A DNA stretch of 63,952 bases, filler included, from Pelomyxa schiedti (GCA_020536535.1; 9 parts of 9 records of this genome joined end to end with filler, not necessarily neighbours in it); one strand, 5' to 3'. Shown: positions 1,279 to 50,662, counted from the whole stretch's first letter. Notes: a model not told the origin generated them from the letters alone. Program-made: numbers and translations.

Positions 1279-3199
1279 ATGCGTATTTCCTACAGGGTAA
1301 CGGTTGTGGTGTGGTTGTGTATCTTATGGGGCTGCGCCTGGGCACAGTGGTGCACAGAGCCAGCCATTGTACAACATTACTGGACGGGCATTTATGGGCA
1401 CTTCGAGACCACACAGTACGGCTCTTTAAATGACAATGACAATGACACCTACACCGGGCTCTGCGGCTCGTCTCAGCTCCCCGGTAAAAAACGCGTTGCA
1501 AACAAAAAAAAACCAACAACACCGACGCGTCCGGCAAAGTAAACTTTTTTTTTTGCCTAACGATAAATGACCGGCAGATGCGTGGTACACGTTCCAGCCA
1601 ACTGTTTCTGGTCAACTTGTTGCTTCTACTTGTGGAACCACTTGGGATACTGTAATCGAGGTTTGTTTGTTTGTTTGTTTGTTTGTTTGTTTGTTTGTTT
1701 GTTTGTTTGTTTGTTTGTTTGTTTGTTTGTTTGCTTTTCCTGTTCTCCCACACAAATGGCCTATCTGTTCCTTATCTTGGGCAATTGTCCACACAACAGG
1801 TGCAGGGCGGCACTACATGCAGCGGGCGTGTCTGCGAGGCGACGGATGACGATGGTTGCGCTTATGCTTCCATTGTCACTCTGTCTGCCAGCGCATATAC
1901 GTTCTACAACATACGGATACGCCCGTGGGCGTACTATTCTACAACGGCCCATTTTATGTTCACTCTTGAGTTTACTCCTGCAGGAGTTCAATCAACATCC
2001 GAGTCGTCTTCAAGCTCACACAATACTCAACATAGTAATGAGAGTGATGATGAGTGTAAGCTTCGTTCCTGTCCCTTCAATTCATCTTACCACTATTTTA
2101 TGCGCAAAGTCTGCCCGGACCGGGTCTTTATTTGGGATGAGGGGTCTTCAACTTACTACTTGACATCAGGCAATGATGTTAACACTGGTGATTGCTGGGA
2201 TGACGAATTGATCTTTGAGTACGGTGAGACAATTGCAATTATAATTAATTCCGGAATAACAAAACAATAAGTAACTCTCACACAGGCATGTGGTTTGAGT
2301 TTTTTACTGATGACTCTTCAAAACTCTCGATATGTTCCGACTGGCCAATCACCCTCATTGTAAGAAGAAACCTCAGAGTAGAGATCTTCTAATGATTTTT
2401 TATAGTTCGTCAGAAATTTATGTGAGAGCTCTTCTACGCCATACTGCTATTATACAGCTTCAAGCAACTGGAAAGGTTGGGATGATTGCGAATACCAAAT
2501 TGAAGTTGACGTGGGCTCAAATTATGATTGGAATCTCAGATTCTTAGTCAAATCGTAATGAGTCCCTATTTTTTTTTACCTTAAAAAATGACTCTTGTAA
2601 AGGCAGCATACTGATACGATAACTGTGAGTACATATACATATGAGTGGTCATCCTCCCATGAATGGTACCACTTTCCATGTAATGTCTCAAATTATTTCC
2701 GAACCGCATTTTAACTTTTCTCAGTCTGGCTTGTGGTTCTGGCCTTCAGTCTCCTGTTCTTAAGTCTTGGATTATTCTGTTTGCTTGGGGCTTACTGCTG
2801 CCACAAAAGAATCGCAAATAGGAGGTAGCCACCCATCCTACTTTTCCATTTTTTTGTTAATATATTGGAAGGAGGGAGCAATTCCAACACCTGGATGTCC
2901 AGAATGACCTGGTTGAAATTCCTTACATAAACAGACAACCGGCCTCAACAGAGACTACTCAGCCTTACAATTTAAGTCCCTCCGTGATAGCACCTCCCAG
3001 TGTGGAACCGTATGTGAACCTTCAGTTGCTTTTCAATTTCCCTCACACACTTCACAGACCATTCACACCTTTGTATGGATATGTTTCGTTCTTTCAACAA
3101 CAACAACAGCAGCTTATCGTTCCCCCAACACAACCACCACCCCAATTGTATCCCACGATTACTCTGCCATCTCTCACCCCAACAACCAGCAACAATTGA
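1279..3199 (+). CDS. Multi-exon type I membrane protein with a PPC-like (pre-peptidase C-terminal-like) beta domain
   Basis: Signal peptide MRISYRVTVVVWLCILWGCAWA. Spliced exons give DAWYTF...STCGTTWDTVIEVQGG...DDDGC...YNIRI, then an S/T-rich linker, a Cys-rich segment, a TM helix (VWLVVLAFSLLFLSLGLFCLLGAYCC) and a P/Q-rich tail. Confidence 0.65.
1661..1732 (+). repeat. (GTTT)18 microsatellite at an intron 5' end
   Basis: Perfect tetranucleotide repeat starting at the GT donor. Confidence 0.95.
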
Positions 3200-48646: not shown

Positions 48647-49939
48647 TGCCCGGAAGTACACCTAGCCTTTTTTCTGCGATTTAATGATCGTAAAAGAAAG
48701 AGGTTTGACAAACTGGATTTTGATTTGCAGTGCATGAAGGGCAGAAGTCGTATCCGTAACCACATTTAGAGCAGTGAGCAACCATAGAGGCCATTGATAC
48801 ACGTCGGAACATGTCCTGACACTGGGCACATTTGTATCCCGCTTGGGATGATAGAACTGTGGTCAGGAGGGAGTGTTCAGTTATTTCTGTGAGTTCGTGC
48901 CTCTGATTATCCCGGTTGGCAGGACAAATCATCCTCTGCAAAAAAAGAGCAACTTAAGAGGGTTGCACTTTGGGTGGCATTAAAGACAACACACTGGATT
49001 GACATCTTCACAAATGACACATTGTCTCCCTCGAGTATTCTCAAAAAGGTACTGTCGGTATTGTAAAGTACAGTACAACAATCAAGTAAAAAATTCATGA
49101 AATACTCACTTGTGAGAAGGCTTTCCCTTCTAACTTGCACAAGTCCCTGCGAGGTTGGTGTCTATCTGGGTACTGTTCCTTTATGGTTTGCGCAATATAA
49201 TTTGAACATGTTGCAAAGTACTCGATCGGAGATGGATCTTATTGGATTAAAAAGCCGCTGTTAAATAAAATCCAAAAGAAAAAAAAAGGAGGGGTACCCA
49301 CCTCTCCTCCCCCTGGCAGCACAACAATCACAGTATACTTTCAAGGCATTATCGAGGGTATCGGGCATCAACTCATTCCATGACCGCGGCTTCCTCGCGT
49401 TGTCAGGAACCTACAAATAACAATGGTGTATTAATTGTTTATTGTTTTTGTTTAATGGTTTTTGGTTTTTGGTTTTTTGTTTTTTCCTTAATTTGCACCC
49501 CTTTATTCCCATAATAACACAAGCCTAGCCCCCAATTTAACACCGTCGCGACAACATACATCGATTGCGCCGCTGAGGCACACTGAGCACCTGGGTCTCA
49601 CGTGCGCGACCGACACCGCCGGCTTGCTGTCGCACATCGTGCACACGACGTAGAACCCGCTCGCCAGGCACTCCTCGTACCTCTCCTCCAAGTCCTCCAC
49701 GTGCCTGCTCGCGCTCGCGCTGGTGCTCGTAGTGGCACTCGCGGCACTCGCGGTCGCGGCGGCTGCCCCCCTCGCCGTGGGGGTTGTGGTGCTCGTTGTC
49801 GGCGTCGTCGCTGCGGCCGTGGGGGTGCGGGGAGGGTCGGCCATCATGGGGTCGTCGCCGTCTGCGGCGGGGGGGCGGGCGGCGCGGCGCTGCTGGGCTG
49901 TGGGCGGGGTGCCGGGGGGAGTGCGGGCGCGGAGGAGGG
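48647..49939 (-). CDS. Parkin-like RING0-RING1 protein fragment (both ends missing)
   Basis: Exons 49939-49560, 49410-49302, 49237-49110, 49051-48995 and 48935-48714 give GFYVVCTMC...HVRPRCSVC...PRSWNEL...YCDCC...IEYFATC...YLFENTRGRQCVICEDVNP. Confidence 0.75.
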
Positions 49940-50039
49940 NNNNNNNNNNNNNNNNNNNNNNNNNNNNNNNNNNNNNNNNNNNNNNNNNNNNNNNNNNNNN
50001 NNNNNNNNNNNNNNNNNNNNNNNNNNNNNNNNNNNNNNN

Positions 50040-50662
50040 ATCACAGTATACTTTCAAGGCATTATCGAGGGTATCGGGCATCAACTCATTCCATGACCGC
50101 GGCTTCCTCGCGTTGTCAGGAACCTACAAATAACAATGGTGTATTAATTGTTTATTGTTTATTGTTTATTGTTTAATGGTTTTTGGTTTTTTGGTTTTAC
50201 GGTTTTTTGTTTTTTCCTTAATTTGCCGACCCCTTTATTCCCATAATAACACAAGCCTAGCCCCCAATTTAACACCGTCGCGACAACATACATCGATTGC
50301 GCCGCTGAGGCACACTGAGCACCTGGGCCTCACGTGCGCGACCGACACCGCCGGCTTGCTGTCGCACATAGTGCACACGACGTAGAACCCGCTCGCCAGG
50401 CACTCCTCGTACCTCTCCTCCAAGTCCTCCACGTGCCTGCTCGCGCTCGCGCTGGTGCTCGTAGTGGCACTCGCGGTCGCGGTGGCTGCCCCCCTCGCCG
50501 TGGGGGTTGTGGTGCTCGTTGTCGGCGTCGTCGCTGCGGCGGTGGGGGTGCGGGGAGGGTCGGCCATCATGGGGTCGTCGCCGTCTGCGGCGGGGGGGCG
50601 GGCGGCGCGGCGCTGCTGGGCTGTGGGCGGGGTGCCGGGGGGAGTGCGGGCGCGGAGGAGGG
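50040..50662 (-). repeat. Near-identical second copy (allele or assembly bubble) of 49329..49939
   Basis: Same two RING0 exons, with small indels in the intron and the Ala/Thr tract. Confidence 0.85.

Follow-up and report, generated by a model that had tools for sequence, protein, structure and literature searches.

A transcribed Pelomyxa schiedti gene predicted to encode a rearranged Parkin-family RBR ligase

We analysed a stretch of 63,952 nucleotides, built from nine records of the Pelomyxa schiedti genome (GCA_020536535.1) joined end to end with filler and referred to here as the window, and found in it the 5' third of a transcribed, intron-rich gene. The gene lies on the minus strand across 48647-50662, and six of its exons were derived from the sequence (Table 1). 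Read together with its full-length product, already deposited as KAH3765652.1, it probably encodes a Parkin-family RING-between-RING (RBR) E3 ligase of about 740 residues in rearranged form, an assignment that we make with good confidence from sequence comparison. As predicted, the architecture is non-canonical, with zinc fingers in or just before RING1 and a ubiquitin-like domain (Ubl) between IBR and RING2.

Gene structure, transcription and full-length product

The five introns in the window all run from GT to AG, are 47-149 nt long and have a GC content of 31-42%, against 39-70% in the exons. About 270 codons lie in the piece of the window that carries the gene; the stop codon at 48681-48683 falls within an intron, and the frame continues past the edge of the piece at 48647. 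At the other end, the annotated ATG (49847-49845) lies within exon 1, whose low-complexity stretch is rich in Ala, Thr, Ser and Pro. The frame is still open upstream of this ATG as far as a gap of N, and it stays open to the contig edge in both versions of the gene, that in the window and that in the contig encoding KAH3765652.1 (JAHLWZ010000194.1).

The gene is present and transcribed in sequencing runs from one study, comprising two runs of DNA (X1, X2) and two of single-cell RNA (X3, X4): the stretch was found in both DNA runs, and parts of it in both RNA runs. Three introns are confirmed by RNA contigs, which omit 49052-49109 and 48936-48994 exactly and join 48665 to 48713; this last join, seen in X3 and X4, corresponds to the intron at 48667-48713 once one ambiguous base is placed. 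No RNA contig in X3 or X4 spans intron 1. A 10.7-kb contig of X1 reaches about 8.6 kb beyond the stretch on one side, apparently upstream of the gene.

We considered whether a TAA in intron 4 or 5 could signal an alternative genetic code or a truncated protein, and rejected the idea, as both introns are missing from the RNA contigs. Intron 4 (48936-48994), translated in the frame that follows D-V-N-P, gives P-V-C-C-L, a stop and C-H-P-K-C, superficially a continuation of Parkin RING1 (P-V-L-V-F-Q-C-N-S-R-H). Given its 59 nt, the stop inside it and its removal in RNA, this likeness is probably due to chance.

An exhaustive HMMER search with exon 5 against a library of 1.8 billion proteins returned KAH3765652.1 (E 4e-43), a "hypothetical protein Pelo_2487 [Pelomyxa schiedti]" of 740 aa in which exons 1-6 are joined exactly as in our window model, including the exon 1/2 and exon 2/3 joins. 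Exon 1 corresponds to residues 1-96, with 80 of 87 aligned residues identical; the differences are seven substitutions and short indels, and only T62A falls in the domain part. Identity is 35/36 for exon 2 (residues 97-132), 41/42 for exon 3, 19/19 for exon 4 and 6/6 for the start of exon 6 (residues 269-274), and across the domain-coding exons four residues differ (T62A, H122Y, Y159H, L236M). The contig itself is 96% identical to the window piece across 842 aligned columns. Between the two versions, exons are under more constraint than introns, with differences at 10 of 536 exon positions and at 15 of 303 intron positions plus 7 indel columns.

We take the window piece to be another allele or haplotype of the KAH3765652.1 gene, from P. 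schiedti or a near-identical strain, and used the deposited protein, whose residue numbers are given below, as a proxy for everything downstream of 48647. Mapped on its contig, it comprises about 16 exons and about 16 short GT-AG introns, with the frame intact throughout. Its domain order reads: low-complexity N-terminus, RING0-like domain (RING0 is also termed UPD), C-x2-C-EDVNP, three C1/ZZ-like fingers, RING1 body, IBR, Ubl, RING2 and a Cys-rich tail. Other look-ups were less informative. Word searches with exon 5 and with the exon 1 open reading frame gave no match, exact-product look-ups of four open reading frames of the window found none on record, and a protein atlas gave only generic zinc-finger/zinc-ribbon clusters, both for exon 5 and for the Cys-rich stretch of exon 1. 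The exon 5 search also returned a 1563-aa repeat protein, which appeared unrelated by eye and was left out.

Domains of the predicted product

The first-pass annotation, made from the sequence alone, had proposed a Parkin-like RING0-RING1 on the strength of six short motifs. All six are present, in the order quoted, on the minus strand in exons 1-4: FYVVCTMC and HVRPRCSVC in exon 1, PRSWNEL and YCDCC in exon 2, IEYFATC in exon 3, and YLFENTRGRQCVICEDVNP, which makes up all of exon 4. The resemblance to Parkin probably goes beyond chance, as HMMER aligns the same residues to Parkin RING0. PF17976 (zf-RING_12) is the top family among 24,736 Pfam models when residues 50-200 or 60-160 are searched (E 0.006-0.009, about 17 bits, 17.3 at best). 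With RING0 and RING1 together as the query, phmmer aligns residues 63-149 to residues 108-189 of Bactrocera Parkin, upstream of RING1 (13.8 bits, i-E 0.15 among 177,635 sequences); human Parkin gives weaker alignments in the same register. About a quarter of the RING0 positions are identical to animal Parkin, as counted on the printed alignment. The proposed RING0 thus has support below threshold: PF17976 is the best family (E 0.006) and the Bactrocera alignment agrees, with both scores lying under the curated thresholds.

Within the RING0-like domain, zinc loops 1, 2 and 4 align Cys to Cys, loop 3 is represented by a correctly placed C-x-C-C cluster, and seven of the eight zinc ligands are kept. 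The equivalents of F146, P180 and W183 are also kept, and F208 is replaced by Tyr; in Parkin, these four residues line the pocket that holds RING2 (PMC3730226). The HMMER alignments agree with the earlier statement that F146 and W183 are conserved and that the K161/R163/K211 patch, which binds the phosphorylated Ubl, reads H/R/T. K151 is in addition replaced by Thr, and judged from these alignments the phospho-Ubl patch is degenerate. We regard RING0 homology as likely, though not proven, because the family had been named before the test and because a significant Parkin RING1 follows the match in collinear order.

For RING1 the similarity is specific to Parkin. Residues 399-475 match PF17978 (zf-RING_14, Parkin RING1) with 35.8-39.4 bits against a cutoff of 26.6, and with residues 390-560 all 23 of the 23 solved-structure matches at E<=1 are Parkins (human, rat and Bactrocera), with no other RBR protein among them. 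Two of the three residues of the phospho-ubiquitin pocket are kept (H302 as H461, R305 as R464; residue roles from PMC11368401). The first-pass annotation read the altered phospho-Ubl patch as a hint of regulation not dependent on PINK1; this may hold, but the partly kept pocket tempers it. The RING1 body lies about 210 residues downstream of the span first proposed as RING0-RING1, outside the window piece; of RING1, that span holds at most the first C-x2-C.

Between that pair and the RING1 body lie three exons. Exons 5, 6 and 7 measure 222, 225 and 192 nt, all begin and end in phase 0, and each encodes one zinc finger. Exon 4, which ends in C-V-I-C-E-D-V-N-P, directly precedes them, and exon 8, which begins with A-M-L-F-F-P-K-P-C-T-H, directly follows; without them the sequence would read C-x2-C-x13-C-x-H-x2-C-x2-C, a canonical RING resembling that of Parkin. 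HMMER places the first RING1 pair elsewhere, at a C-P-V-C that closes finger 3. We lean, by a modest degree, towards a cassette inserted inside RING1, with the exon 4 motif as the genuine start of that domain, because the C-P-V-C belongs to the pattern of the finger family: it aligns with the invariant last pair of that family, and the tail of finger 3 resembles the end of finger 2. Both the exon 4/5 and the exon 5/6 join are used in RNA contigs; skipping of the finger exons was not observed, the data being thin.

The exon 5 finger has relatives in four metagenomic proteins of three repeats each (E 1.5e-9 to 1e-5, in the library of 1.8 billion). Thirteen aligned repeats share eight invariant zinc ligands: a C, an H and three C-x2-C pairs. 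At E<=0.1, Pfam C1_2 is found in 9 of the 13 repeats and ZZ in 8 of the 13, whereas exon 5 itself matches neither and reaches no Pfam cutoff. A structural model of exon 5 (pLDDT 77) has the central domain of KKT2a as its best fold match (TM 0.65, E 0.5), followed by C1 domains, without significance for either. Weak matches of exon 5 to UPF0515/Shiftless and to ribosomal eL43 reflect a generic zinc-ribbon resemblance and were dropped after the C1/ZZ-like relatives had been found.

The first-pass annotation had named the lack of IBR-RING2, beside the lack of a RING0 match, as a result that would refute its reading; both IBR and RING2 are predicted in KAH3765652.1, with Cys and His at the catalytic positions. 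The IBR is a weak match to PF01485 (residues 489-535, E 0.035, 14.6 bits with the cutoff at 24.3); the Parkin alignment extends into its first cysteines, and the Cys pattern was seen by eye. For RING2, Parkin RING2 ranks first among the solved-structure matches (E 1.5e-4), followed by Ariadne/ARIH1 (E 0.02-0.06), and with 27.9 bits IBR_1 and IBR_2 pass the cutoff of 27. The Cys and His of the catalytic C-M-H motif of Parkin (Cys431, His433) have C684 and H686 as their counterparts in the alignment. Between IBR and RING2, residues 571-638 (about 2841-3176 of the contig) form a Ubl, which matches PF00240 with 26 bits against a cutoff of 25.4 and many ubiquitins among solved structures. This internal Ubl has Thr at the position of Ser65 of ubiquitin and Parkin and Val at that of Ile44; a phosphorylatable residue and a hydrophobic patch would therefore be kept. 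After RING2, residues 700-740 form an additional Cys-rich tail where Parkin has a short W-F-D-V end, and this tail may be an additional zinc site.

Table 1. Parts of the gene in the window and their coordinates
Feature	Position	Strand	Length and boundaries	Content
Exon 1	49560-49847	-		Low-complexity stretch, then N-terminal half of RING0-like domain; F146 equivalent; zinc loop 1 (C-x2-C) and zinc loop 2 (C-x2-C); K161/R163 read H/R
Intron 1	49411-49559	-	149 nt; GTATGT..TAG; 33% GC	Join as in KAH3765652.1
Exon 2	49302-49410	-	Phase 1 end	Middle of RING0-like domain; P180 and W183 equivalents (PRSW); zinc loop 3 C-D-C-C
Intron 2	49238-49301	-	64 nt; GTGGGT..AAG	Sole acceptor preserving the frame; join as in KAH3765652.1
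Exon 3	49110-49237	-		End of RING0-like domain and linker to exon 4; IEYFATC holds C212 equivalent; Thr at K211 position, Tyr at H215 position
Intron 3	49052-49109	-	58 nt; GTGAGT..CAG	Exactly absent from X3 RNA contig
Exon 4	48995-49051	-	19 codons	Ends in C-V-I-C-E-D-V-N-P, probable first zinc-ligand pair of RING1
Intron 4	48936-48994	-	59 nt; GTGTGT..GCAG	Exactly absent from X3 RNA contig
Exon 5	48714-48935	-	74 codons; phase 0 at both ends	First of three C1_2/ZZ-like two-zinc fingers
Intron 5	48667-48713	-	47 nt; GTTTGT..AAG	Contains TAA at 48681-48683
Exon 6, start	48647-48666	-	First 20 nt; cut by edge of window piece	Second C1/ZZ-like finger
Second copy	50040-50662	-	91-99% identical to 49327-49939; beyond a run of N	Part of exon 2, intron 1, exon 1

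Duplicated segments and alternative readings

Part of the gene occurs twice in the window (Table 1). The copies differ by small indels in an intron 1 repeat and in the Ala/Thr/Ser tract, X2 has a variant contig over the same stretch, and the second copy most likely represents two haplotypes that the scaffolder set in tandem, or assembly redundancy, rather than a second gene. The intron 1 repeat (49436-49508, also 50142-50224) takes up much of the intron and is T/G-rich and of short period, with units such as GGTTTTT and TTTATTG on the plus strand, and its length differs between the copies. In the contig of KAH3765652.1, 1123-1243 and 1344-1464 are an internal duplicate of the end of exon 5, intron 5 and the start of exon 6, which the annotated model skips; one copy is 100% identical to the first 121 bases of the window piece, and the duplicate probably arose as an artefact when amplified single-cell DNA was assembled. 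On the plus strand opposite exon 1, 49602-49940 holds long open frames with 65-81% GC, most simply a by-product of GC-richness rather than genes.

Several points weigh against assigning the protein to the Parkin family. PF17976 scores 17 bits against a curated cutoff of 25, covers only profile positions 2-51 of 73 (residues 65-118), and was not reported when the whole of KAH3765652.1 was scanned; residues 45-200 searched alone with phmmer gave no solved-structure match. The eighth zinc ligand of RING0, H215, is replaced by Tyr, Asn stands at the Glu444 position of the catalytic triad, and a single-sequence AlphaFold model of the RING0 region has a pLDDT of 41 and is unusable. In the annotated model, no N-terminal Ubl, REP or ACT was seen, a REP-like Trp motif being sought by eye; with the frame open to the contig edge, an upstream exon encoding a Ubl may still exist. 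The protein has no other whole-protein relative in our searches, as a word search with residues 50-560 returned KAH3765652.1 alone and a metagenome scan returned none. Domains past residue 274 lie outside the window and were taken from the 96%-identical contig. Finally, the window exons scanned singly gave nothing Parkin-like in Pfam or among solved structures; we do not count these exon-by-exon blanks as absence, because pieces of 19-74 residues are too short.

Part of this evidence would suit a different reading, in which the RBR ligase stands, but the Cys-rich region at its N-terminus forms some unrelated zinc domain that resembles RING0 by chance through its C-x2-C spacing. The sub-threshold scores, the missing structure match in isolation and the Tyr at H215 are what such a domain might give, and the region is also longer than Parkin's through small insertions. 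Against this, PF17976 came first among all Pfam models in a test aimed at one family named in advance, the match lies collinear and upstream of a significant Parkin-type RING1, and the non-ligand core residues F146, P180 and W183 are kept (PMC3730226). We therefore consider a chance likeness of RING0 unlikely.

The sequence would not be an old Pelomyxa gene if it were contamination, such as animal DNA, or had recently been transferred from an animal. The Parkin subfamily has been called animal-specific in a review of RBR proteins (PMC2904391), and the P. schiedti assembly was made from seven amplified single cells (PMC8887013). Yet similarity to animal Parkins is low (bit scores <40), and the architecture is unlike that of any animal Parkin in our searches. 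The roughly 16 short introns fit P. schiedti genes, which have 7.4 introns each, 98% of them GT-AG (PMC8887013). The stretch also recurs in X1 and X2 and parts of it in X3 and X4, all of one study, and two or three allelic versions exist. Foreign origin of this kind seems to us highly improbable.

That the locus is a decaying pseudogene or an amplification or assembly chimera, such as a finger-repeat gene fused to an RBR gene, might be suspected from the local duplications beside gaps in the window piece and in the contig, and from the 5' end at the contig edge in both, but it can be given hardly any credence, since the frame is intact over about 16 exons of the contig, the inserted exons begin and end precisely in phase 0, the exon 3/4, 4/5 and 5/6 joins, which connect RING0 with the fingers, are crossed by RNA contigs, and between the versions the exons have changed less than the introns.

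The reading that we prefer is thus a rearranged Parkin-family RBR ligase, and its mechanism may be sketched by homology. RING1 would bind a ubiquitin-charged E2, and ubiquitin would move on to RING2, where Cys684 would accept it next to His686, and from there to a substrate. Since F146, P180 and W183 are conserved and Tyr replaces F208, RING0 is likely to lie against RING2 in the manner of Parkin. Regulation and the recognition of targets or membranes are probable tasks of the internal Ubl and of the inserted fingers. What the analysis shows is the structure of the gene, its transcription, its domain content and its specific similarity to Parkin, whereas catalysis, autoinhibition and any part in the turnover of the mitochondrion-related organelles or the endosymbionts are inferred.

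Relation to known systems and implications

Parkin is the best-studied RBR ligase, owing to its role in Parkinson's disease and mitophagy. The Pelomyxa protein shares with the Parkins of human, rat, Bactrocera dorsalis and Pediculus humanus (5C1Z, 4K95, 6DJW, 5CAW) RING1 and RING2 and, by weaker matches, a RING0-like domain and probably an IBR. The PF17978 match takes in the Parkin-specific extension of RING1, and in the ranking of solved-structure matches Parkin is the best or only RBR match for RING0, RING1 and RING2. Nothing like Parkin RING0/UPD was reported to exist either as a structure in the PDB or as a sequence in the human genome (PMC3730226). The architecture departs from that of canonical Parkin. 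Parkin has the REP linker between IBR and RING2, whereas the Pelomyxa protein has a Ubl there; it also carries three fingers between C-x2-C-EDVNP and the rest of RING1, and an extra C-terminal Cys-rich tail. At individual positions, K151 is Thr, K161/K211 are His/Thr, H215 is Tyr and Glu444 is Asn.

Other known systems resemble the protein in part. Ariadne/ARIH1 has the RING1-IBR-RING2 supradomain in common with it, including the catalytic Cys of RING2, and RING2 weakly matches ARIH1 and ARIH2 (E 0.02-0.14). However, there is no Ariadne match for RING1-IBR at E<=1, no Ariadne-specific Pfam family was reported, and Parkin is the better match on every domain. The inserted fingers share the ligand pattern of C, H and three C-x2-C with the metagenomic repeat proteins, whose repeats mostly match C1_2 (DC1) and ZZ, and their best fold match is to the kinetoplastid KKT2-KKT3 central zinc fingers, namely KKT2a; here the fingers are found inside an RBR ligase.

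The hosts also differ: that of Parkin is an animal, and this one is an anaerobic amoebozoan. The first-pass annotation had surmised an anaerobe with reduced mitochondria, which agrees with the description of P. schiedti as an anaerobic amoeba with mitochondrion-related organelles (PMC8887013). Entamoeba histolytica has been reported to lack both PINK1 and Parkin (PMC9796589), and one paper on the organelles of P. schiedti and one comparative paper on those of Archamoebae make no mention of Parkin, PINK1, mitophagy or ubiquitin. KAH3765652.1 is already in GenBank as a hypothetical protein, and as far as we found it has no description in the Pelomyxa literature.

A broader evolutionary account can be offered only tentatively. 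The Parkin family, including RING0, may predate animals and have been present at least in the common ancestor of Amoebozoa and animals, and may then have been rewired in an anaerobic amoeba: a finger cassette would have entered a phase-0 intron inside RING1, a Ubl would have taken the place of REP, and the phospho-Ubl patch would have been lost. The resulting ligase might act on hydrogenosome-like organelles or prokaryotic endosymbionts without the canonical PINK1 switch. We think it possible that all of this holds together, but would not be surprised if it did not.

If true, a Parkin-type RING0-RING1-IBR-RING2 protein in an archamoeba would mean either an earlier origin of the family or transfer between lineages. 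It would also amount to a natural experiment in Parkin regulation, with the Ubl moved, foreign fingers placed in or just before RING1, the phospho-Ubl patch degenerate and the phospho-ubiquitin pocket partly kept. As its host has mitochondrion-related organelles rather than respiring mitochondria, together with many endosymbionts, the protein may offer a handle on the roles that Parkin-like ligases had before, or have apart from, mitophagy.

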